A stretch of DNA of 14,299 nucleotides from Vitrella brassicaformis CCMP3155 (GCA_001179505.1 CDMY01000868.1:1-14299), one strand, 5' to 3'. Numbered from the stretch's first letter, positions 1 through 14,299 are shown. Program-made: numbers and translations. Notes: generated from the sequence alone by a model not told the origin.

Positions 1-441
1 GTCAAAGTTGTTTCTGTCCATGTATGGCATCATGAAGGGTGGTCAACACAGATCTCACTTCGGTGATGGCTGATAAGATCGTGTCTCCTCAGAATGCTTT
101 CCTTGTCTTTCCTTGTCTTCTCCTCTCTCTCTCCGTTACACAGCAATCTACCCTAGCTCACAAGCTCGCAGTGGTTCGTCTTGCCAAGCTGGCAATCCTG
201 ACATGATGGCGACCGACCATGGTGGGTATAAAGGGAGCATGGTTCTACATGACACTCATGCAGACCGACGCAGCACCAGAACCCTTCAGATTGCCCTCAG
301 AAGACGTATCTGCACATGATGCCGTCCAGCCGCCCGGCTATCTACGCATAACAAAACATACTACAACCGACAAACGGTGTGAGAAAAACACTTCCTCGGC
401 TTCGAGTCTGATATCTGTCTGTCTATCTCCCAATCCGTCTT

Positions 442-522
442 TCACTTCTCTAGCAGGCTTGGTGGCACCGGTCCAACCTTGGTCAGCACATACAGCTCGT
501 TGCCGAACCCGCGGGCTGCATC

Positions 523-553
<31 letters not shown>

Positions 554-1636
554 ACACATCGATCGGATGGATGGATGGATCTGTATGGCCCCTCAGCTCA
601 CCTATCCTCAGATCCTCATCCACATAGGTGGTTTCCACCGGTCCACCACCCCGCCGTCCCTCCCTGTTGAGATTGACCTTAGGCCACGGCCAGTTGCGCG
701 GCACCAGCTGCCCCAAAAAGGTGTCGGGCTCGAACGCCACGCTTTGGAAAGTCAGGTAGAGTTTGGAGTCGCTCTCGACCTCAGCCGACGCCCTCACACG
801 CAGCCGGGCCACGGTGCTGCCCAAGAACCGATTGGCCACCGAATCGAACTGAGGCTGCAGCTCGACCACGTTCTCGGCTGCGTTGACGACGCCGTCGAGG
901 TTGACGTTCTGGTACACCTGGCCGACCTGGACAGCTGGGATGAGACCGAGAAGCAGGACGTCGAGGGCGTTGGTGAATAGCAGGCGCCACTCGCCGTTTA
1001 GGGGCGATGAGCCGTCCTTCATCAGGTTCGGCTGTGGGTTTGGGTTGACGCTCTCGAGCAGCTCCAGCACCTGTCAGTCAGATCGGATCCGACGCAGCCT
1101 CCCATGTGTGCATTTCTATGTGGCCGTACGTGTGTACGTGCATACCTCTAAGATGTCTGCCGAGTCAGGCCGCTTGGCGTTGAACCCTCGATTCACACCT
1201 GCCCATCACACACACACACACACGCACAGAAAGAGAGAGAGAGATGAGGACCAGTCCTGCATGTGTGACCGTCTTGCCGACCTGGGCACATGAGGTATAG
1301 ATCTTTCTTGAGCTTAGCCCTGTCCATGGTGGGGAGGATCTCAAGAGGCCGTGCAGAGGGCGAGGGGGTGTCCATGGCCGTGTCGGAAGGTGCATCTGTT
1401 TCATCACCCTCCGAGGGATCTGCCGAAGAAGGCGTGACGGTTGTCGCTGCGCTCCCGGTGCTCTCCTTCTGCGCATAGAGGGGCACCAGCCGCCGTGCAT
1501 GACTATTGTAATCTGCCACTCTGGACGGCCCTGTCCTCCAGTGGGAGTGAGTTCGCAGCAGCTGCACGAAGGCATCGCTTGGCAGCAGGAAGAAGGCTTG
1601 AAGGATGACCGACAATGCTGCAATCAGGCGCATCAT
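442..1636 (-). CDS. Plastid lipid-associated protein / fibrillin (PAP_fibrillin family), 4 exons: complement(join(442..515,602..1070,1146..1198,1282..1636)), 316 aa, with bipartite signal + transit leader
   Basis: Manual splicing with GT-AG sites and consistent phases gives one 951-nt ORF. It contains fibrillin hallmarks LKKDLYLMCPGVNRGFNA, ILEVLELLESVNP, LNGEWRLLFT, GQVYQNVN, VETTYVDEDLRIARGFGNELYVLTK. N-terminus is a hydrophobic signal ending SDA|FV followed by an S/T/R-rich transit region. Confidence 0.9.
523..580. repeat. (CA)n plus (GATG)n microsatellites in fibrillin intron 3 (representative of many intronic microsatellites in the window)
   Basis: Directly visible. Confidence 0.9.
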
Positions 1637-1799
1637 TGGAACGAACGAACGAACGAACCTCCCACACCGATTGCGAGCTCAGATGTGTTGATCTTCGTGG
1701 GAGGATGGAGAGCCTTTCAGGATGTCTGTGCAGTGCATGAACCGAGTGATCTCGTCCCTCCGCCCCGGCATCTTCCCATCTGTAGCCCCCTCATGCGCG
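1637..1799. promoter_or_regulatory. Putative compact bidirectional promoter between the fibrillin and DUF179 genes
   Basis: Divergent start codons at 1636 (-) and 1800 (+; or 1722) leave only 85-163 bp; contains an (ACGA)n run at about 1641-1657. Inferred from geometry only. Confidence 0.45.
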
Positions 1800-4621
1800 A
1801 TGGCATCTCTGGCGTCTGCTCAGTCGGCGGCAGCCAGCCCGCTGGCGGCCCTCACCAAACCCCACCTGAAACGTACGCAGGCTGACAGGCAGACCGACAC
1901 ACGGGGAAAGAAGCAGCTGGGATGACATGGGGAGGCCTCATACGGATGGATGGATGGATATCAATGGTGTGTGTGCTGTCTGTGTGTGTGTTTGTCTGTG
2001 CTGCACTCAGTGTACACGAAGACCTACCGGCTGCTGAGTCGGCTGACACGCTGGTTCGATGAGCAGAGCGCCTACAAGGCCTTCCTCAGTGAGACCTACA
2101 GATACGACCGCGGTCAGCCACAGATCATGGGATGGGCACGGCACACACGAAGCTTGCGTGTTGTGTGTGTGCGAGAGAGAGATAGATCGGGGGTCGGGGG
2201 TTTGTTGCTTTGGTTGCAGAGTCGAGCAGCGCGTTGTACAATGCCTTGCTTCAGGAGTACTTGAACAACGCGCACTTCTACCTGCCCAGCCCCTTCAGCA
2301 AGGAGCCGTCGCTCACGAGATTCCTCCAGAGGAAACTCAGGAAACACTCCGACCCAAATGTCAGTGAGTGAGTCAGGAGGGGCACCTTGCCCCCCCACAC
2401 ATGGGCGATGCAATGCTTGAGTGGGTGCCTTGCTGTGTGGCGTGCAGACTATACTCGAGCTGCTGGACGCGGCTTTCTGTGCAATAAGGCACCTCAGCAG
2501 GGTGAGTGAGTGAGTAGCCGACCCTTTATCGACCACCTAGAGATGCATGCAGGCAGGACGCCCCCTTCCACCCTCCCTCCCTCCGTCTCTCCGTGTGTGT
2601 GTGTGTGTGGTTCAGGTGAGGTCGAGCTGCATGGACGTGGCTCTCGAGGAGCCTTACGTTTGGGAGAGCGACGAGGAGCGGAAGCGCACCAACAGCGCAC
2701 TCGTCATCGACGGCTCGGCCGTGCAAAAGGGTCAGTTAGGGGAGCGGGCAAAGAGAGCCAACATGGCCATGTTGGGTACTTGCTTGTTGTCGGTGTCAGG
2801 TCTGTTTCTCCTCGCCCACCCTTTGTCGACTGACATATGGTCAGCACATACATAAGGCAGCATTAAGACCGACGAACACTGCCGTAGTGTGTGTGTGTAT
2901 GTGTGTGTGTGTGTGGCTGGTCTTCAGGAGCCGCAGCGTGATTCTGATCCATAACCGGCACACCAACGGCAGCGTCGAAGGCACGCAACCACACATACAC
3001 AACACACTCAGGTTTCGTGTATGTGTGTATGTGCGTATGTGTGTGTGTGTGGCCGCATTGTGCAGGTGTGATACTGAATCGTCGCCCTGGTTCGTCCCGT
3101 TCGATTCGCCGCCATGTGAGTCAGCACTACAAGGACTTCTTCACTCACAATGAAGTGAGTGAGTCAGTGAGGAATCCAGACAGACAGACACCATACCACC
3201 CACACAACCAACACAACCAACACGATCGACACAGCACACTGACCGGCCCCTTTCCTCTGTGTCAGCGGCACCAGCAGTACTGGTCCCCCCCACCCTCCAC
3301 CGCCCAGCCATCCGGCCAGTCGTACAATCGGCGAGATTTCTGGTTCGGCGGCCCTGTGGCCGAGAAAGTGCTGTTCCACGACTGCAGACCACTGGGAGAG
3401 GAGGTCAGCTGCTTATGGGGGGAAAGGGGAAAGAAAGGTCAGTCTGTCTCTCTCTGTCGTTGCTTGGCGGTCCGTGCGTGTGTGTGCAGGAGGTGATTGC
3501 CAGTGTGATGTATCGCGGCTACAAGCGGCCCTCTGGCGGTGTGGCCAGTGGCGCCATGCAGAGGCAGCAGCACCAGCCCCCCGCTGCGCAGAACCCCACC
3601 ACAGCAACACTCGGGCAACACAGGCAAGCCACACCCACTCGCACAGACCCACACACCACCGACCACCGACAAACGATAATTGCATCTTATGTGCGTGCAC
3701 TCGATTTACTGCACTAACTGCAGCAGCCTCTCAACGGCAGCAGCCTACTCGTTCAAGCCCATATCGCCCATTTCCCCCTCCCCCCACCACGTGTCCGTCA
3801 TTCACCCCCCCACACACACCACCGCCCAGACGGCCACTGAGTTCCACCAGCCGATGCCGCATCGTCCAGCTGGTGGCTCCATGGCCGGGGTGCATGAGCA
3901 GCCGACTGCGGCAGCCAGCGAGACGGCGGCAGCCAGTGAGAGTCCGGTGGCTAGCAGCGGCAACCGGCCCAAGTTGAAGCCGACACGGGTACTCACCTCG
4001 CCCACACAAATTGAGAGGCATGTGTGTGTGTGTGTGGGGGTGTGTGTTTGTGTGCGTTTGTGCAGCAAAAGAAGATGATCGGCATTGCGGGGTGGGACCC
4101 CGGGCAGCTGGAGCAAGAGCTAGAGTGAGTGAGCTGCATTGCATCCACACCCACACCCACGCCCACGCCCACACGACCGACGTGACGTCCACAGTGGAAT
4201 GTCTGTCTGTGTTGCTGCTGCTTGCCTTGCCTTGTCTTGCCTTACCTTGCCACACACACACTAATCAAATCCAATCAACACACAGGTGGGGCTACTGGCT
4301 TCCACTCCAGTGCAGAGGTGAGCTGAGGTGGGCGAGCAATACGAGGGATGACGGCGCACCAAACACCAGTGCAGTGAGTGTGTGTCGTGAATGTCAGATG
4401 CCGACATAGCGCGGCGCATTGTGTGGTGTGGGGACCGAGATGACACCTGGAAAAGGCTACTCAGGTGCCCTCGACACACACATCCATGTGGCTGTGTCGA
4501 TGGATGGATGGATGGATGGATGGATGGACGTGTGTGTGTGTCAGTTCGCTGTCGCCCTGCTATGGTGAGATGAGCCGCCTTAGCACCAAGGCCGTGCAAC
4601 AAGTCATAGAGGCAAGTAACA

Positions 4622-4656
<35 letters not shown>

Positions 4657-4775
4657 CAGCCATGCAGCAAAGGCAGGCAGCCAGGCAATAGGATGGGAGC
4701 TCATCTCCGTCTCTCTCTGTGTGTGTGTGCATCTGATGTGTCCGATAGGGTTTTGATGACGGCGATGATGACTGA
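1800..4775 (+). CDS. DUF179 / YqgE-AlgH-like protein with N-terminal extension, 16 exons: join(1800..1872,2011..2112,2220..2359,2448..2501,2616..2730,2800..2839,2928..2980,3066..3154,3266..3403,3490..3623,3724..3988,4066..4124,4286..4317,4398..4464,4545..4611,4749..4775), 484 aa
   Basis: All exon phases chain into a 1455-nt ORF. DUF179 motifs occur in canonical order: GLFLLAHP, WSRSVILI, GVILNR, FWFGGPV, GEEEVI, IGIAGWDPGQLEQELE, WGYW, TWKRLL. An upstream in-frame ATG at 1722 is possible, and the last exon (GFDDGDDD*) is the least certain. Confidence 0.85.
4499..4526. repeat. (GATG)7 microsatellite in DUF179 intron 14
   Basis: Directly visible. Confidence 0.95.
4620..4656. repeat. Compound (AC)n(AG)n microsatellite in DUF179 intron 15
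   Basis: Directly visible. Confidence 0.9.
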
Positions 4776-5099
4776 CTGACCGGACGGGTGGCCACACAGC
4801 CGCGTGTGTGTGGTAGTGTGTGTGTGTTTGATGTGATTGGCTAGACAACATAATCAATACGTCTTGTGGTTTGCTACTCGAGGGCGCAAAAATAAATGGA
4901 CAGTCAGTGCCTGCGAGCCAGCCAGCCTCTCATGGTCTGCGTGGACAATGCTGAGCTTTGGTTTGGTTTGACTGAACCAATTCCTGACGAACACATAAAC
5001 GTCGATTTGACACAGAAACTCACTAATCCATCCACAGATGCATTCAGTCAGTCATTCCCCTCTGCGGCACACACACACCGATTGCCAGCCAGCCAGCAC

Positions 5100-5992
5100 T
5101 CAATCCACCACCCACCCCCTGTCGATGACGTCACGCTCCAGCTCAAATGCCTGCAGCAGACGGCGGGCGGCACCAACAGACACTGGATAGCGGTCGGCGA
5201 GCGGCTGAGACCGATCGGCGGCAGATGGCTCCGTCGTGCGCAGGTCGATGTCGCCGTACCCCACCCTCAGATGGGCGGCGACGGTCTCGTTGGGTCGGAA
5301 GCCGCTCACAATCACACGACGAAGGTCAATCGGATTCGCGGCATTCAGATTGAACCAGACGTCGCGGTAGTCGACCGCGATGCCCTGATCCTCACTGATG
5401 TCGTCAGTCCTCACTAGACGGCCATACCGATTGTCACCACGGCCGATATTTGCTGCGAGCACCCTCCTGTGACCCACTCCCTCTTCATGTGACCAGCTGA
5501 GAAGCGCGTAAAGTAGAAATGCCGAGAATGAGTGATAGAGCCAGCCGCCAGATCGGATGACGGGATCGGTCCTCTTGTAGCCTTCAGCATAGGGATGGCC
5601 GCCCGGCAGCTCACCCAACGGCACCACACGAAACGGCGCCTCGTTGCCCATCCGATACTGTCCGTTGTCGGCTTGCTGCAGCGCTAGGCTCTGCCCGCTG
5701 TGTGTGAGCAGGTGGCCGAACGACCGATAGATGGCAATGGCCAATGGCAGCTGATGGAATGCCGTCCTGCTGGGAAGGTGGGCTGTCAGCCACTGAGCCG
5801 ACAGCACCAGGGGCAGCCCATTGGCAGGCGTCAGCCGATAGATGGCGGCCAGCCGGATGAACCGCCCCATCCCAGGCCACTCGTTGCTGCCCTGCTCCAG
5901 CACATAGGCCGCCCGCAGCACGTAGCTGAATGGGAGAGGGGCGGTGCGGTCGATGTCGATGAGGCCGGTGAGGGAGTGGCGGGCGAGGGAGC
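5100..5992 (-). CDS. Unknown family, subfamily A copy 1 (A1); 5'-partial because the start lies in or beside the N gap; intact C-terminus
   Basis: Open frame from the gap edge to TGA at 5100-5102 (SLARHSLTG...YVLEQG...FHQLPLA...GELPGGHPYAEGYKRTDPVIR...SGFRPNETV...SQPLADRYP...DVIDRGWVVD*), clearly paralogous to the ORFs at 8687-9904 and 12769-13882. Confidence 0.8.
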
Positions 5993-6292
5993 NNNNNNNN
6001 NNNNNNNNNNNNNNNNNNNNNNNNNNNNNNNNNNNNNNNNNNNNNNNNNNNNNNNNNNNNNNNNNNNNNNNNNNNNNNNNNNNNNNNNNNNNNNNNNNNN
6101 NNNNNNNNNNNNNNNNNNNNNNNNNNNNNNNNNNNNNNNNNNNNNNNNNNNNNNNNNNNNNNNNNNNNNNNNNNNNNNNNNNNNNNNNNNNNNNNNNNNN
6201 NNNNNNNNNNNNNNNNNNNNNNNNNNNNNNNNNNNNNNNNNNNNNNNNNNNNNNNNNNNNNNNNNNNNNNNNNNNNNNNNNNNNNNNNNNNN
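5993..6292. other. Assembly gap (300 N)
   Basis: Directly visible run of N. Confidence 1.
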
Positions 6293-6813
6293 GGCACCAT
6301 GACTCCATACGTAGATACCGCCCATTCCCAGGTGGCCAGCCAGTGCAGATCGCCCAGTCACACACAAACACGCCCTTATAACAACCACGCACGGAGTGCT
6401 GGGGGTGCATGAGAACGCACCGCCGCCCTCTCCAGGGCGGAGAGGGGCGGCAGGTGGCCGACCCGCAGACACCCCCAGTGCACGCCCATACACATATCAC
6501 CGCCGGGATAAGTAGGAGCGCGGCAAGACACACACACAGCATCCCTTTTGCGAGCTTGGCTTGCAGAGCTCTCCTGTTTCCGGGCATGTGTGCGAGGCCT
6601 TCAGGACAGTCTCTGCCACACACGAAGACCCATCGTGGTGCAATCGATCTGCATGCTGCGAGCTGCCATCATCCCTGCGACGCCGTTTGGATGCTCTGAG
6701 GTCAGAGAAGGGCAACCAGGAGGGCCTGATGACACCAGCAATGACATCCCTGTGTGATTCCTCTGTGTGATTGTCGCAGAATCTGCGACTCACTAGGGGC
6801 TTCTTCCGCCGGC

Positions 6814-8061
6814 ATGTTCACCGATGTGTGGCGATGGCTGAATGGCTTATTCGCGGTGAGCCACGCGATGGGAGCGGCAGCCTACAGTGAAACGGTCTGT
6901 CTGTGTTGATGTTAACTGCAGACATCCTCTGACGCATCAGCCACTGTCCCTGCCGCTCATGTGCCGCAACACCTCTCACCGACGGTCGCCGAGTACGTCA
7001 GGAGCTACTCACAGCTGGAGGCCCTCATCGACGCCCATCCCACCCAATTCACCGCCGCCGTCCTGCTGCCCATCCTCGAGCGGCGGCTGTCCGCCGTGGT
7101 GGCCGCCATCTTTGGTGGCCTGGTGCAGGTGCCCCTACCTCAGCTCACCCAAGGTGCGGCCACCACTGCCCTCATCGACCAGCTCAGCCGCCGGCTCTTC
7201 ATCCTCGAGAGGGGCGGCGACTGGGACAGATGGCGGCCTCACCTGGAGATGCTGTACTTGCTGAGGGGCGAGAGGGCTGTGGTGCTGGATGACGACAACT
7301 TCGGTGTCTTCGGCAGCCGGGCGGCCTTTCTGGATGAGAGGGAGGCCGTCCGGCAGTGGAAGATACTCAGCTGGGGGGTCACTGTCAGGGATGATGATGG
7401 CCAGCACAGACGACTGATGGGCGGCAACTGGATTTTCCGCCACAGCTTCCACACGAGCGGCTTCCATTTCCTCAACCCCCGCGCCTCTGCCAGCCCCGTC
7501 TTCCCTAATGTATTCGATCCCGCCAATCCGTCCACAGAGCTAAAGGACTGGACGAGCCCTAGCTACACCTCCATGGTGGCCTTCGTTCTTTTCGGCTGGC
7601 TCTATAATGGCGATCACATTCGTTGGATCAAATCCTGGCGGTCTTACAATCCTGCTTCCACTGCATCTCGGCGTGTAGGTAAGCTGCTGGCGACCTCTTC
7701 CAGCAAAGTGGCACAGAGGGGGGCGGGGGCGGCCGTGTTCGACAAGAAGTGGTCTGCCCGGGTGGTACGAAAGGGAGATCCATCATCGGTGCCGGACGGG
7801 AAGATAGAGAGCCACCATCGGCGGCTGGTGGTGTTTGGCAGCGAGGCGATGGGCGAAAGGCACATGGCGATCATTTGGCTGAGCGATCGGGAGTGTTATT
7901 ATCCTCGTGATGTCTTCATCTATTCAACCGAGCCGGCCCCCCACGGGAAGACGCGCACTGTCGTGATGAGAGTGCTGGGGGAGCACCTGGAGGGCAAAGT
8001 GTGGCAGCTGGAGAGGGAGGTGGACGAGGACAGGCAAGCTACGGCCTGCACTGTGATGTGA
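6814..8061 (+). CDS. Unknown family, subfamily B copy 1 (B1): join(6814..6855,6922..8061), 393 aa, C-terminal CaaX (CTVM)
   Basis: The long ORF is open from 6922. A phase-0 intron 6856-6921 (GCG|gtgagc...gttaactgcag|ACA) links it to ATG 6814 (MFTDVWRWLNGLFA). Strong paralogy to 10775-12055. Confidence 0.8.
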
Positions 8062-8138
8062 TCGGGGGCTTTGCCGTAAGTGTGTCGACTGTTCATCCAG
8101 GACAGACAGAGAGATGCTCGGCGGTCAATGAGAGGGGA

Positions 8139-8162
8139 GACAGACAGACAGACAGACAGACA
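8139..8162. repeat. (GACA)6 downstream of the B1 stop
   Basis: Directly visible; B2 has (GACA)5 at a similar distance from its stop. Confidence 0.95.
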
Positions 8163-8686
8163 GCCGGGCAAGGGCTTTTTGCTCTCTGCCCGTCTGCTTG
8201 CATGGGCCTCTGTGTCCGTTCCCTTGGCTGCATCCTGCGTATGTCTGTCTGGTGAGTGAGGCATGACGTGGCGTGTGTCTGTGTTAATGGCACACGGGAA
8301 TGAATCAGCCCCGTGTCATTTGATGGGCAAAATGAAAGACAGTGAGTGGTTCTGCTGGCTGACGGGTTCATATGTCAGTCAGACGCGCACACACAGATGG
8401 ACAAACACACCCATAGACTCACTCGCATACTCACACACACACACTTCTTATGACAGACACACGGCATCCATCGAGTAGGTCCCTTGTCTGTCTGTCTGTC
8501 TGTCACACCCTCATCAACACAGCAGCCGACGGCGTCGGCCGGTCACGTCCTGTGATCATGTTCATCAGTGTGTGTGTCATGATGTTGTCCGTGCAGGCCA
8601 AACCTGCCACCGAAACAGTTGACACGTCGCTCAGGATTGAGTGGTTCATTCAGTCATGCAGTCAGTGAGCCTGACAAAAAAATGAG

Positions 8687-9904
8687 TTAAGCCCCCCCTC
8701 GCCCATCCATCCTGACCGCAATGCATTCAGTCCACATAAGCCATGCAGACGCACTCAGTTCCCCTCCACCAATTCTCGTCACTGCCAGATGGGCAGACCC
8801 TCTCCACCAGTTAAATGCACCACCAACACCCTTCACCCCATTACTGTACGTCACGCTCCAGCTCAAATGGTCGCAGCAGACGGCGGGCGGCACCAACCGA
8901 CTCGGGGTAGCGGTCAGCGAGCGGCTGAGACCGATCGGCAGCAGGCCGCTCGGTCGTGTGCAGGTAGATGTAGCCGTACTCCACCACCATATGACGGTCT
9001 CGTTGGGTCGGAAGCCGCTCAGAATCAGACGACGAAAGTCCCACACACCAGAATCATTCAGATCGCCCCCATCATAGCGGTAGTCGACAGCGATGCCCAA
9101 ATCCTCTGTGATGTCGTCGGCCCTCAGCAGACGGCGACGCCGAGGATCATCACGGCCGATGTTGGCCGACAGCACCCTCCTGTGACCCACTCCCTGTCCA
9201 TCCGACCAGCAGAAGAGCATCCTGTGCAGCAGGAATGCCGAGAACGAGCGTATGAGATTGGCGCCCTGGCGGATGACGGGATCAGTCCGCTTGTAGCCCT
9301 CAGCGTAGCGATGGCCGCCCGGCAGCTCACCCAACGGCACCACACGAAATGACTCATAGCCGATCCGATAGCTCCCACTGCCGATTTGCTGCAGCGCCAG
9401 GCTGGGTGTGTTGTGTGTGAGCTGCTGGCTGAACGTCTTGTAGATGGCCATGGCCAAGGGCAGCTGGTGGAAGGCCGTTGCTGTGGGCAGTGCGTCAGCC
9501 GACAGCCGGAGGAGCCGCGTTGCATTGGGCGTCAGCCGATAGATGAAGGCCATCCGAAGGAACCGCCCCATCGCCCGCCACTCCTCGCCACTGCCCCGCT
9601 CCAGCACATAGACCACCTTCAAGCCGGCCTCCACATCACCGCCAATGTCGAAGGCCAACACGTCCGCCAGCCCCAGACGAATGATGTGCTCATCCACGCG
9701 GCGCCTGACCTCACAGAGCATCGTGTCGACATCATCGGGATGGCTGTTGCTGATGTGTGAGCGGAGAGCGGCGCGTCTGTTGGGGTCAGGTGACATGGCC
9801 ACTGCAGCCGCCTTGCTGATGGCGATGCTGCGCAGGGGCGGGACTGCCGGCGGGGCGGTGTGGCGAGTGGCATGGGGAGGGGGAGGCTGGGCAGAGGACG
9901 CCAT
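8687..9904 (-). pseudogene. Subfamily A copy 2 (A2); intronless ORF with a 7-nt deletion at 8993/8994 that frameshifts the C-terminus (ancestral frame ends 8841; shifted frame ends 8687). May be a truncated functional allele rather than a dead gene
   Basis: A1 plus strand atg-ggcggcg-acggtct versus A2 atg-acggtct. The ancestral tail HMVVEYGYIYLHTTERPAADRSQPLADRYPESVGAARRLL survives in another frame (ORF 8841..9044). Confidence 0.7.
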
Positions 9905-9920
9905 CAGTCAGTCAACCCAC

Positions 9921-10297
9921 CTGAATCAAGGACACACACAAAGTGGCAATCAGTGCTGCCGAGATGAGTGTGCTCACCTTAGAACACTTGGCTATGAAGG
10001 AATCTCTGTCAGCAGCCCACCGCCATATGTGATGGATGCGCTGGTGACTCTGCAGGCACACACACAGCAGCATTATCCATCAGTGTCAGTCAATGCGACA
10101 GCGAAGGAATCGGACGAGCCACTGACCGTCAGCAATGGCTCCAGCGGCCCAAACTTTGAGGAGCAATCGAGTGGCTAGGCGGCCGTCGTTAGCGAGCCAA
10201 CGAGGCACTGTGAGAGATCTGCAGGCACACAAAACACCAAGCAGCAGTCGACTGAAGCATTTCAACGCTTCATCTGCCTCTTTCGCCGCCACCTTAC
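9921..10297 (-). other. Spliced 5' leader of A2 with three introns (10219..10297, 10050..10126, 9921..9977)
   Basis: Minus-strand donors gtaagg, gtcagt, gtgagc and acceptors tgtgcctgcag, tgtgcctgcag, ccttgattcag. An in-frame TGA lies just upstream of ATG 9904. All six sites are retained upstream of A3. Confidence 0.7.
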
Positions 10298-10774
10298 CCT
10301 CTCTGAGCGTCTTGAGAGCTAGAAACCTTTGGCTCTCGGCGATCTGCGAGCTTTGGCTTTACGTCATCTTTTTGCGATATTCTGGTGACAACAGGGCCGC
10401 GTAGAGTGTCGGGAAGATGCCCAAAGAGCCGCTGTGATGACATCAATCACCACAGATGCTGCCGTCATCTCCATGAGTGACGCTGATCGGACGCATTGAG
10501 GTGAGGGAGGGGACGCAGGAGGGATTCATGGAATCAGCAATGACCGTCTGTGTGGTCTCTGTGTGTGTGTGGCAGATTTGACGCCTTTTGAGTATCGTTG
10601 TGCGGTTGAGCGGGAGAGGGGGAGAGCACTCAGTGAGACCATCATGGGCAGCAAAGCAACCAAGGTACGGGAAGCGAAACCAGGCTGCTCGGATGTTGAC
10701 AGATCGATGAGGCGCCGCAGATCCATTCACTGATGTGATGATCCGTGATGTGTCTGTTTGTGAGTGGGCAGATC

Positions 10775-12055
10775 ATGTCGGCTGCTGCTGCTGGGGCTGG
10801 TGGCTCTGTGGCTGACGAGCCGTCCTCGTCGGCTGCGCCTGCCGCCAATGGCAACCAACAAGTTCGCTGCAGAAGGACACGACAATGCCGGCACACAGCT
10901 GTCTGTGTGTGTTGGGCTGCAGGTGCGGTCAGTGCACCTTCTGCCAACCACCACCACCAGCACCAGCAGCATGATCGCCTTATCGGTGCCGCTGACGTGC
11001 CGCAAGATGTCGCCCCGACGGTTGCCGAGTACGTCAGGAGTTACGCACAGCTGGAGGCCCTCGTCGACGGCCATCCCACCCAATTCACCGCCGCCGTCCT
11101 CACACGACTCCTGCCCATCCTGCAGCGGCTGCTGGGCACGCTGCTGGCCTCTCTCGGCCTCGGTGGCTTCCTGGTGTGCCTCATCCCCCAGCTGCCCCTC
11201 CCTGCGGCACTCAGCCACGGCTGCTGCACCGCATACCTCATCCAACAGCTCACACGCCGACTGTTCATGCTCGAGAGGGGCGGCAATTGGGCCAGATGGC
11301 GGCCTCATCTGGAGATGCTGTACTTGCTGCAAGGCAATAGGCCTGTGGTGCTGGGCGATGGCAACTTCGGTGTGTTCGGCAGCCGGGCGGCCTTCATCGG
11401 CGAGACGGAGGCCGTCCGGCAGTGGAAGATACTCAGCCGGGGCGTCATTGTGAGTCACAGAGGCCAGCAGAGACGACTGATGGACGGCGACACGATTCTC
11501 CACGAAGGTGTCTTTGTCGCACGTCCAGCCCGTTCCGCCCCCGCCCTCCTCCCTTCTGCCAGCCCCCTTTTCCCTCACGTACCATTTGACCCCGCCGATC
11601 CGCCCACTAAGATGAACGGCTTGACGCACCCAAACTACACCTCAATGGTGGCAATCGTCCTGTTCTACTGGCTGGTCGGTTGCGGCCACATCCCTTGGAT
11701 CAGGTCCTGGATGTGGAACCCTCAAGCCTCTCGTCCCTGGTGGTCTGACAGTAGTTCCTCTTCTGCCTCCCGGCGTGTGAGAGGGCTGCTGTCGGCCCCT
11801 CCCAGCAAAGTGGCACAGAGGGGGGCGGGAGTGGCTTTGTTCGACGGGAAGTTGCAGTGGTGGGGGGGGCATCAGCGGCTGGTGGTGCTGGGCAGTGAGG
11901 CGATGGGCGAGGGGCACATGGCACTCATTTGGCTGGGCGATTGGTGGTTTGACCGCAGGGTCAGCATCTACTCAACCGAGTCGTTCCCCCACGACAAGAC
12001 GCGCACTGCCGTGATGGGTGTGCTGGGGGAGGAGGAAGAGCAATTAGGTAGATAG
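10775..12055 (+). CDS. Unknown family, subfamily B copy 2 (B2), about 426 aa if unspliced; N-terminal ~70 aa uncertain (possible in-frame intron ending at 10922)
   Basis: Open frame from ATG 10775 to TAG 12055, paralogous to B1 from VPQ..PTVAEYVRSY onward. (TG)-rich intron-like sequence with a ctgcag acceptor at 10917-10922. Confidence 0.8.
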   Translation: MSAAAAGAGGSVADEPSSSAAPAANGNQQVRCRRTRQCRHTAVCVCWAAGAVSAPSANHHHQHQQHDRLIGAADVPQDVAPTVAEYVRSYAQLEALVDGHPTQFTAAVLTRLLPILQRLLGTLLASLGLGGFLVCLIPQLPLPAALSHGCCTAYLIQQLTRRLFMLERGGNWARWRPHLEMLYLLQGNRPVVLGDGNFGVFGSRAAFIGETEAVRQWKILSRGVIVSHRGQQRRLMDGDTILHEGVFVARPARSAPALLPSASPLFPHVPFDPADPPTKMNGLTHPNYTSMVAIVLFYWLVGCGHIPWIRSWMWNPQASRPWWSDSSSSSASRRVRGLLSAPPSKVAQRGAGVALFDGKLQWWGGHQRLVVLGSEAMGEGHMALIWLGDWWFDRRVSIYSTESFPHDKTRTAVMGVLGEEEEQLGR

Positions 12056-12121
12056 TATATGGTGTGCTGGAGGGCCTTCGCCGCCAGTCATTGTACAGAT
12101 TGATTTCGATCAAGAGGATGA

Positions 12122-12141
12122 GACAGACAGACAGACAGACA
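12122..12141. repeat. (GACA)5 downstream of the B2 stop
   Basis: Directly visible. Confidence 0.95.
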
Positions 12142-12768
12142 TCGGGTGTTCCTTCCTTTGCAAACCGCATGGAAAGACTGTGTGTACCAGTTGGAAACAA
12201 AGGCTCTTGTGACGTTCGGCATCATGGTGGACGGGTGACTTCAAATTGAGTGACTGCCGGGCTTCCGCTGACTGAGTGGTTGTATGTGTGTGGCCATCCA
12301 TGGTGAACTCACGAAGACTGCTCGACTGGCCGGCCATATGTGTGGTCTTCATGGACTCTCTCTCTCTCTCTGTGTGTGTCGCTGTGTGTGTGTCGATGTG
12401 TGTGTGAATGTGTGGTGACTTCCTGTGACTGAGTCGACTCGTGTGCATCATGTTGATCAGTGTTCGTCGAGCCGCTCGCCCGTGGACGCCAAACCAGCAC
12501 TCAACCAGCTGACATCTCGGCGATCGATAACTGTGTGGTTCTTTCAGTCATCCATTTGATTAAAGCCGTGCAGTCAAGTGAGTCTGACATGAACTAGTAG
12601 GGCGTCCAGCCACCCCCTCTGACGGCACACAATGCAATCAGTCACACCAGTGATTTAAACGCACTCATCGCCTTCCGCAACTGCTCGTCAGGCAGACAGA
12701 CAGGCAAACACCCCTCCCTCTCCACCCATTTCGGGCACCGCCAACACCCAGCCGACAGCCACCGCCGC

Positions 12769-13882
12769 TCACCCCATCACCCATCCCCTGTCGATGACAT
12801 CACTCTCGAGATCGAATCGCCCCAGCAGATGGCGCCACAAGGGCATCGACTCGGGATAGCGGTCGGCAAGCGGCTGAGACCGGCGGCAAGCAGGTCGCTC
12901 AGTTGTGAACAGCTCGATGGTACCATTCCCCTCGATGGCACCATTCCCCACCCACAGATAGGCAGCGATGGTCTCATTCGGCCGGAATCCACTGAGAGAC
13001 ACGACGGTCGTCAGTCGCGCCAGCATCATTTAGATCGCCCCGGTCGTAGCGGAAGTCGAAAGGGATGCCCAAATCCTTTGTGATGTCGTCGGTCCTCAGC
13101 AGCAGACGGCCATAGCGATGATTGTCACGCCCGATGATTGCCCACAGCACACTCCGCACGCCCACTCCCTCTCCATAGCGCCACCAGCGGGGCACCCTGT
13201 TCAGCAGGAGTACCGAGAAGGAGCGATAGAGTACGGGGCCGCATCGGATGACTGGATCGGTCCGCTTGTAGCCCTCGGCATAGGGATGGCCGCCCGGCAG
13301 CTCACCCAACGGCACCACCCGAAAGAGCGCCTCATTGCGGATCCGATAGTGTCCGTTGTCGCCTTGCTGCAGCGCCAGTGTGGTCCCTTTGTATGTGAGC
13401 TGCTGGCCGATGATCTTGTAGATGCCCATGGCGAGGGGCAGCTGGTGGAAGGCCGTTGCTGTGGGCAGCGAAGCAGCCGACAGATGGAGGGGCCGCGTCG
13501 TGTTGGGGGTCAGCCGGTAGATGAAGGCCAGCCGAAGAAACCGCCCCATCGCCCGCCACTCCTCGCCACTGCCCCGCTCCAGCACATAGACCACCTTCAA
13601 GCCGGCCTCCACATCACCGCCAATGTCGAAGGCCAAGACGTCCGCCAGCGCCAGACGACTGATGTGCTCATCCACGCGGCGCCTCACCTCATAGAGCATC
13701 GTGTCGACATCATCGAGATGGCTGCCGCTGATCTGTGAGCGGAGAGCGGCACGTCTGTTGGGGTCAGGTGACATGGCCATTTCAGCCGCCTTGCTGATGG
13801 CGATGCTGCGCAGGGGCGGGACTGCCGGCGGTGCGGTGTGGCCATTGGGAGGGGCAGGGGGAGGCTGGGACGAGGACGTCAT
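12769..13882 (-). pseudogene. Subfamily A copy 3 (A3); intronless ORF with a 2-nt deletion at ~12994-13000 that frameshifts the C-terminus (main ORF stops 12974; ancestral frame continues to 12769)
   Basis: Between ccRct and acgacg on the plus strand A1 and A2 have 9 nt (cacaatcac / cagaatcag) but A3 has 7 (gagagac). The tail SGFRPNETIAAYL...SQPLADRYP...DVIDRGWVMG* is in another frame (ORF 12769..13029). Confidence 0.7.
12913..12948. repeat. 18-bp tandem duplication (ctcgatggYaccattccc x2) inside the A3 tail, encoding GNGAIE GNGTIE
   Basis: Two adjacent copies at 12913-12930 and 12931-12948 with one mismatch; absent from A1 and A2. Confidence 0.95.
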
Positions 13883-14299
13883 CAGTCAGTCAACTGATCT
13901 GAATCAAGGACACACACAACACAAGGTGACAATCAGTACTCGAGATGAGTGTGCGTCTGTGCGCACCTTAAAGCACTTGGCTATGAAGGAATCTCTGTCA
14001 GCAGCCCAACACCAGACGGCTGCAGGCACACACACAGTAGAGTGGACAGCAGGGGGTACACAAGCATCCATCAGACGAGGAAGTCGTCAGGCGAGCCACT
14101 GACCGTCAGCAATGCCCACCAGCGGCCCAAGTGAAGCAATGGTGTGGCTATGCGGCCGTCGTCAGCGAGTCAAGGAGGCACTGTGAGAGATCTGCAGGCA
14201 CACAAAACACCGAAGCAGCAGCTGACTGAAGCATTTCAACGCTTCATCTGCCTCTTTCGCTGCCGCCTTACCCTACTCTGAGCGGCCTCAGAGCTTCAG
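13883..14299. repeat. Segmental duplicate of 9905-~10320 (upstream non-coding region of the A gene), direct orientation
   Basis: Long shared strings such as ctgaatcaaggacacacacaa, cacttggctatgaaggaatctctgtcagcagccca, gagccactgaccgtcagcaatg, gaggcactgtgagagatctgcaggcacacaaaacacc, gactgaagcatttcaacgcttcatctgcctctttcgc. Confidence 0.95.
13899..14271 (-). other. Spliced 5' leader of A3 with three introns (14192..14271, 14020..14103, 13899..13966)
   Basis: Donors gtaagg, gtcagt, gtgcgc and acceptors tgtgcctgcag, tgtgcctgcag, ccttgattcag at positions homologous to the A2 leader. Confidence 0.7.

Follow-up and report, generated by a model that had tools for sequence, protein, structure and literature searches.

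Divergent paralogue cassettes of a large, probably F-box-like gene family in the chromerid alga Vitrella brassicaformis

Vitrella brassicaformis CCMP3155 is a chromerid alga and a relative of the apicomplexan parasites, with a genome of 72.7 Mb. The window analysed here is an entire contig of this strain, 14,299 bp long, with positions counted from the contig start. From position 5100 to the contig end it carries five genes of one family in the order A1(-) B1(+) A2(-) B2(+) A3(-). The question raised by this locus is what kind of protein such genes encode, and whether the repeated head-to-head arrangement of an A gene and a B gene reflects two partners that cannot do without each other, as the original prediction had proposed. 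The answer that is probably correct is that the genes belong to a Vitrella-specific, expanded and fast-evolving family of F-box-like receptors, the genes of which commonly lie in divergent paralogue cassettes and are duplicated in this form. The genes and the spacers belonging to them are the following.

5100-5992, minus strand: A1, the C-terminal 296 codons and the stop of an A1-type gene.
6922-8061, plus strand: main exon of B1, intact, with F-box-like N-terminal helices and the family domain.
8687-9904, minus strand: A2, an A2-type gene, frameshifted.
9905-10744, no strand: A2-B2 spacer, conserved between cassettes, candidate shared (bidirectional) promoter.
10745-12055, plus strand: B2, an intact open frame, with the family match at 10907-12034.
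12775-13882, minus strand: A3, an A2-type gene, frameshifted.
13883-14299, no strand: region upstream of A3, a homologue of the A2-B2 spacer by window self-alignment.

The listing of open reading frames (ORFs) and the profile searches bear out the strict alternation in strand and subfamily and the period of about 4 kb that had been described for this array. The start codons of A2 and A3 (9904 and 13882) are 3978 nt apart, and the corresponding codons of B1 and B2 (6961 and 10997) are separated by 4036 nt. Identity is 77% between A2 and A3 and 54% between B1 and B2. Alignment of the window with itself pairs 8848-10320 with 12797-14295 at 80% identity. No family member was found at 1-5100 by the family profile search, and the contig stops at 14299, before the place for any third B gene. 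The window contains two and a half head-to-head cassettes. The absence of A-A and B-B neighbours remarked on earlier holds within the window, but A-A, A1-B and B-B neighbours all occur elsewhere in the genome.

Comparison of A with B by BLASTP revealed no similarity beyond a common LERG..W motif. Profile-profile alignment (hhalign; 38 A and 28 B sequences) gave a probability of 92% and an E-value of 5e-7 over 217 columns, and in the AlphaFold models of A and B the secondary-structure elements follow in the same order. A and B are distantly related paralogues and represent two old subfamilies within a very large family; the pair is therefore an inverted pair of paralogues and not a pair of two unrelated partners. 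Three subtypes can be separated by their N-terminal start.

A1-type: (L/V)PxE(L/V)W start; includes A1 of the window.
A2-type: long Pro-rich start with an LPxLAIxxAAxMAMS-like motif; includes A2 and A3 of the window.
B: VPQxxxPTVAEYVRSY start.

The (L/V)PxE(L/V)W start is kept among the A1-type relatives even at 40-50% overall identity, and the family domain has invariant W, D and P as well as near-invariant Y, R and E residues. The genome of the alga contains at least 152 matches to A and at least 99 to B, dense on the contigs C240, C350, C377, C683 and C343 and scattered on others. All named homologues found in a search of 5.8 billion proteins are from Vitrella. A profile search of 1.84 billion cluster representatives (clusters at 50% identity) returned at least 176 clusters at E <= 1e-3, and all 20 of the distant hits sampled came from Vitrella or from short environmental contigs. 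The family is restricted to the Vitrella lineage, in agreement with the lineage specificity assumed earlier. In several other proteins of this alga (P0274, P0231, P0255/P0259, P0246 and P0273), the family domain is fused to further domains and behaves as a shuffled module. It follows BTB_2 with a weak TLD match, precedes a C-terminal ubiquitin, follows HMG-box/SAP or a cyclin C domain, or occurs with ankyrin repeats. The BTB module is another cullin adaptor. In the A2-type protein P0096 (368 aa, on a contig of the Joint Genome Institute, JGI), a CBM_25 carbohydrate-binding module is inserted N-terminally; its match of 27 bits lies at the Pfam cut-off.

The copies are 50-80% identical to one another. 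Paralogues show a ratio of nonsynonymous to synonymous substitution rates (dN/dS) of 0.46-0.76 at a dS of 0.22-0.44, and on C240 about half of the copies are frameshifted, truncated or present as fragments. Taken together, the ratios and the broken copies point to birth-and-death evolution under weak or diversifying selection, in which single genes decay at a high rate.

The most likely job of the family proteins would be that of substrate receptors of SCF (SKP1-cullin-F-box) ubiquitin ligases. The F-box end would dock on SKP1, and the fast-changing C-terminal domain would select the protein for ubiquitination. The N-terminus is predicted to form a short three-helix module of the F-box kind. 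In the model of A, which has a predicted local distance difference test score (pLDDT) of 91.9 and a predicted template modelling score (pTM) of 0.90, residues 1-85 align with the F-boxes of beta-TrCP1, FBXO31, Cdc4 and Fbs2 at Z 4.3-5.2 in an exhaustive structural alignment. In the AlphaFold2 (AF2) model of B1 (pLDDT 77.8), residues 1-87 align with the F-box of beta-TrCP1 at Z 5.3, with a root-mean-square deviation (rmsd) of 2.8 over 75 aligned residues. For the two models together, the F-box alignments have rmsd values of 2.8-3.9 over 70-81 residues. The signal is weak but coherent: the matched proteins are those that an F-box should find, with Z in the range that the tool calls common.

A docking prediction points in the same direction. 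Vitrella SKP1 (P0144) and residues 1-100 of P0002, a full-length A1-type relative of 344 aa, gave a predicted complex with an interaction prediction score from aligned errors (ipSAE) of 0.81, whereas the highest of three controls reached 0.02; the mark of 0.81 is reached by 51 of 78 solved complexes and by 2 of 108 mismatched pairs. The contact agreement was at least 94% and the partner pLDDT at least 68, and the predicted interface is canonical, being formed by the C-terminal helices of SKP1 and F-box residues 1-34. Three family members, including P0116, are named F-box proteins in UniRef. The F-box status of the A1-type is well supported by these models. That of B is probable, on the basis of the fold match, the hydrophobic pattern and the UniRef naming of P0116.

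Several observations weigh against an F-box receptor family. In A1, A2, A3, B1 and B2, and likewise in eight full-length relatives, no Pfam domain was found with the limit set at E <= 10, which agrees with the earlier remark that no domain could be recognised in either protein; Pfam scans of the five window proteins with 40 relatives likewise gave no family-defining match. With the Pfam F-box profiles (PF00646 / PF12937) no member passes the threshold, the best scores being 17.4 and 14.8 bits, both from distant members, against a cut-off of 24.3 bits. A genome-wide scan with PF12937 gave no match on the family-rich contigs. The structural F-box matches reach Z of only about 5. The SKP1 prediction covers one A1-type relative, P0002, and no window protein; its pass shows likeness to known SKP1-F-box complexes and not proof of binding, and it may reflect complexes remembered by the model. 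Alignment of the A1-type, A2-type and B N-termini against each other by hhalign gave no similarity, and the F-box status is therefore only probable for B and no more than possible for the A2-type, including A2 and A3.

The C-terminal part belongs to the same side of the balance. This domain of about 280 residues is well folded in the model, and substrate binding can be ascribed to it only conditionally since informative matches are lacking; the fusion of the domain to BTB in another member is no more than suggestive of such a role. Foldseek against the Protein Data Bank (PDB) gave no match at E <= 0.001. Searches of the ESM Atlas by shape and by features gave nothing usable (template modelling (TM) score <= 0.37), and profiles made from the A and B alignments detected no relative among the sequences of the PDB. 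The resemblance of the C-terminal subdomain (approximately residues 220-344, the last ~120) to TBP-like domains, phosphoglucomutase domain 4 and KA1 is of a generic alpha+beta kind at Z 5-7 and was not taken as homology. The name 'TLDc domain' given to one B member in UniRef was also set aside: Pfam did not reproduce it, and TLDc structures are absent among the fold matches.

The run data on transcription have to be read with reserve: the RNA label of the sequencing runs X1 and X2 is a guess of the tool, and these runs provide contigs only, without expression level or strand. Exact-match contigs from both lie inside B1, A2, B2 and the shared 3' region and none lies in the spacers; in B1, such a contig in a probable RNA run covers 7356-7801. 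The depth at 10100-10499 is zero in X1 and X2, and the interval is covered by the DNA-like runs X3 and X4. The contigs of X1 and X2 are a weak indication that the window genes are transcribed. Transcripts for both subfamilies were found in MMETSP.

The alternative that survives best accepts the arrangement as described and takes the proteins for something other than ubiquitin-ligase receptors. The helices would merely resemble an F-box, and the domain would be an enzyme, a structural protein or something else. This would be consistent with Pfam F-box scores that never exceed the threshold and with fold matches near Z 5; an active site could be built from the invariant W, D and P together with the near-invariant Y, R and E, and the fusions of the domain to HMG-box/SAP, cyclin, ankyrin and ubiquitin modules also speak for it. 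Such an interpretation is nonetheless unlikely, because docking on SKP1 is strongly predicted, through an interface of the canonical kind, the LPxELW motif has been kept in the family, the BTB and ubiquitin fusions indicate the ubiquitin system, and high dN/dS with gene loss is typical of receptor families rather than of enzymes.

The next question is how the arrangement of the genes arose and what keeps it. An ancestral inverted duplication would have set two family members head-to-head around a spacer of ~0.6-1 kb. The resulting gene-spacer-gene cassette has since multiplied, probably through repeated segmental duplications accompanied by gene conversion among the copies. Pairing was counted for the best 30 B loci genome-wide, four of which are cut by contig ends, leaving 26 scorable. 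A head-to-head A gene within 1.5 kb, lying about 1 kb off, was found for 14 of them, and 12 had none, so that the divergent partner expected at each copy is present in only part of the cases. The chance expectation of such pairing is about 7% even on the family-dense C240. Among the A2-type genes (about 47; counted by hand from coordinate tables), about 16 have a B gene opposite them and about 7 a further A gene; opposite about 20 there is no family member. Along the whole of C240 (153 kb), three of the head-to-head pairs are clean A(-)B(+) pairs and two are A-A pairs, each joining an A1-type to an A2-type gene. Several A genes on this contig stand alone, and two or three B genes lack an upstream A.

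From one cassette to another the whole spacer is conserved, at 86-88% over a length of 1.1-1.4 kb. Unpaired B genes retain only the proximal 100-400 nt of the spacer, and the ends of this remainder therefore mark rearrangement breakpoints. The A2-B2 spacer of the window is 73-94% identical to the spacer of a C240 cassette and about 80% identical to the region upstream of A3. The A2-B2 cassette aligns end to end with C240 at 11.2-14.9 kb, with a mosaic identity of 0.5-0.96 that is characteristic of gene conversion. From the pairing of 14 of 26 B genes and the conserved spacer it follows that the cassette was copied as a unit, and it is a real duplication unit, though a divisible one. The duplication of the pair as a unit, proposed for the array, is thus retained, but the first unit is not a simple copy of the second because its A1 is of another subtype than A2 and A3. 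Two loci depart from the usual neighbourhood: on C240 a MORN-repeat gene takes the place of the A gene expected upstream of one unpaired B, and on the JGI contig L020 (4807 bp) a B gene is followed by a convergent gene of an M60 (enhancin-like) peptidase, not by an A gene.

The cassettes could also be held together by selection on the pair, with A and B as obligate partners in a heterodimeric receptor, a sensor-executor system or a poison-antidote system. Some F-box proteins do work as dimers (Pop1/Pop2, beta-TrCP). Pairing far above chance, together with the constant spacing and the conserved spacer, would fit such a system, and so would the partner similarity matrices, the correlation of which is significant (p ~0.01) but weak (Mantel r 0.31), so that the agreement expected between the A and B trees is found in a reduced form. 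The N-terminus of the A2-type is divergent and may no longer be an F-box, which would suit an asymmetric pair. Against obligate partnership stands the fact that about half of the B and of the A2-type genes have no family partner, and that intact genes are as frequent among unpaired B genes (10/16) as among paired ones (10/14). Different neighbour combinations exist, as given above, and in the window both intact B genes adjoin a truncated or frameshifted A gene. A and B are moreover paralogues of one family, and Pfam revealed no HET or toxin-like domain in the window proteins and no match to NB-ARC, LRR, TIR or CC; no NB-ARC-like fold was present among the structural matches of the models either. 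The frequency of the arrangement has a general background as well, since closely spaced genes of Vitrella are oriented head-to-head more often than chance (PMC4501334). Obligate partnership is improbable on this evidence, and neither this claim of the original prediction nor its parallels to paired NLR (nucleotide-binding leucine-rich repeat), HET and toxin-type systems are supported.

A narrower version deserves separate mention. In asymmetric pairs, B or the A1-type could be the working F-box receptor and the A2-type, with a degenerated F-box, its decoy, inhibitor or co-receptor, and the copies could form a diversifying two-component recognition or conflict system on a ubiquitin basis. Such an arrangement is a speculative possibility, with a small chance of being correct. 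If it were true, a free-living relative of apicomplexan parasites would have a system of this sort based on ubiquitin and not of the NLR/HET type.

The genes as cargo of a transposable element or of an integrated viral region are a very improbable explanation: it could draw on the high copy number with many broken copies, on the high-copy repeats at 1-203 and 6293-6539, and on the expanded F-box, BTB and ankyrin families that giant viruses often carry, but the copies are 50-80% identical and not near-identical, the unit has no terminal repeats in the window self-alignment and no conserved 3' flanks between cassettes, and the GC content of the window is uniform with its surroundings. The densest family cluster, on C240, contains genes for methionyl-tRNA synthetase and MORN-repeat proteins (16269-18464; 98713-99939), and the ten longest other ORFs of this contig include no transposase, reverse transcriptase or viral marker; mobile or viral origin is therefore unlikely. 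Transposable elements in Vitrella amount to only ~1.5 Mb (PMC4501334).

The best comparison for an expanded F-box-like receptor family is with the well-known lineage-specific F-box expansions, of which it would be a variant set apart by a new C-terminal domain and by the unusual architecture of its cassettes. Like the plant FBA/FBK/FBL proteins and the F-box-FTH and F-box-FBA2 proteins of Caenorhabditis, the Vitrella proteins combine a predicted F-box-like module at the N-terminus with a variable C-terminal domain; a high dN/dS, numerous pseudogenes and the clustering of hundreds of copies within a single lineage are also common to these families. Unlike them, the Vitrella family has a C-terminal domain that differs from all known F-box-associated domains and for which neither Pfam nor structure comparison offers a clear relative, its putative F-box is too divergent for Pfam, its copies form divergent paralogue cassettes and not simple tandem arrays, and its host is a chromerid alga. 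For the parasite relative Toxoplasma, only ~19 F-box proteins have been predicted (PMC11570480).

Head-to-head pairs with a shared promoter offer a second comparison. In the ferroxidase/permease pair of Mucor (PMC12957363) and in histone pairs, as in Vitrella, two divergent genes and a conserved spacer are copied together, and the conserved spacer is a likely common control region, which in Vitrella is a candidate. The Vitrella genes differ from these pairs in being paralogues of each other, not functionally distinct genes, and in that the pairing is often lost with the genes kept. Plant paired NLRs (RPS4/RRS1, RGA4/RGA5) resemble the cassettes in lying head-to-head, in being duplicated as pairs and in evolving fast. 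In Vitrella, however, the genes lack NB-ARC, TIR, CC and LRR, no functional differentiation is demonstrable, and pairing is optional. Fungal het-c/pin-c loci are different in that the Vitrella proteins have no HET domain by Pfam.

Toxin-antidote elements and the S-locus F-box (SLF) clusters are similar in consisting of linked, lineage-specific and fast-evolving genes. Ubiquitin-ligase receptors act as the antidote or recognition part in some toxin-antidote or S-locus systems (zeel-1, SLF). Vitrella has no toxin-like or RNase partner, and both of its genes are of the same family. In contrast to a toxin-antidote pair, A and B are not strictly linked, about half of each being unpaired and the unpaired B still intact.

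By Pfam scan, only about 15 F-box genes are recognisable in Vitrella. If the family proteins are F-box receptors, the repertoire of this alga rises several-fold, and the closest free-living relatives of the apicomplexans would have an expanded, fast-turnover ubiquitin-receptor family of the plant or nematode style. The family also defines a well-folded domain of ~280 residues that has no Pfam entry or clear structural relative. The cassettes are a clean natural example of divergent paralogues duplicating with their spacer, useful for the study of bidirectional promoters and gene conversion in alveolates. For annotation, more than 150 entries named 'unnamed protein product' are explained and wrong gene models can be flagged.

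The left end of the array requires some further features.

5993-6292, no strand: assembly gap (N), covering the A1 start and whatever separates A1 from B1.
6293-6539, no strand: high-copy interspersed repeat, forming the right flank of the gap, outside both genes.
6814-6855, plus strand: probable first exon of B1, 14 codons with the motif M-F-T-D-V-W-R-W-L, placed from the sequence against the annotated model P0100.
6856-6921, plus strand: B1 intron, 66 nt, GT..AG.

A1 matches the family-A profile at 5106-5990, corresponding to profile positions 77-364 of a profile length of 365. It had been described as a long ORF; it is an A1-type family gene, but the frame of 507 aa (5100-6623) was rejected as a real protein, since it is open only because the N run is translated as X. 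Family homology ends at the gap edge (5990/5992), at profile position 77/365. About 50-75 codons are therefore missing at the start of A1, among them those for the F-box-like helices expected there, and this part has been lost in the assembly gap. A1 is 78% identical to P0002 and aligns best, at this identity, with full-length relatives having the LPxELW start; the start of A2 and A3 is long and Pro-rich. The final 196 nt of A1 before the gap (5797-5992) are 98% identical to an A gene at C683:18987, the two genes being overall only ~78% identical. Either gene conversion in recent times or a local mis-assembly beside the gap accounts for this 98% tract.

The repeat at 6293-6539 (247 nt) has at least 40 genomic copies with up to 99% identity, many of them at contig ends, and is unrelated to the family. 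The depth of read-derived contigs over it is ~10-30x that of the neighbouring bins, and the contigs break at 6539. The repeat probably caused the gap. Because of the gap and the repeat, the A1-B1 junction is a scaffold join through a repeat. Adjacency of A1 and B1 is plausible because A1-type/B cassettes also occur on C683 and C377.

The two frameshifted A genes have lost the end of the family reading frame in different ways. In A2 there is a 7-nt deficit near 8994 relative to intact copies, and the last ~50 family codons (8847-8993) lie in another frame. Read-derived contigs of X3 and X4, from two other studies, span 8874-9110 and are identical to the assembly across the lesion. A3 has a 2-nt deficit near 12999 relative to intact copies; its ORF (12974-13882) is cut short, and the rest of the family sequence is read in a different frame as far as 12775. 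The aligned sites differ, and the lesions are therefore independent, with the last 50-70 family codons out of frame in each. The public model of A2 (P0037) appears to be wrong, as an invented intron bridges the frameshift.

The ORF of B1 extends over 6961-8061, and its family-B profile match is at 6925-8019. The motif at the B1 start is also present in P0101, P0116 and P0131. The public model P0100 of this gene appears to be wrong, as it starts at 6299, inside the repeat; the conserved motif indicates the ATG at 6814. The low-complexity start of B2 probably holds a short intron, and the public model P0136 looks wrongly shortened, to 205 aa.

Beyond the family genes, a further high-copy repeat occupies the left contig end (1-203). 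It is present in at least 40 copies that are 95-100% identical, and many of these lie at contig ends; the remaining 204-5000 is single-copy without a family member. The read-derived contigs of all four runs break or jump at 12121-12141 and 10947-10971, with dozens of different continuations. These break points are probably short sequences common to many family copies, or a low-complexity stretch coding for His/Gln.

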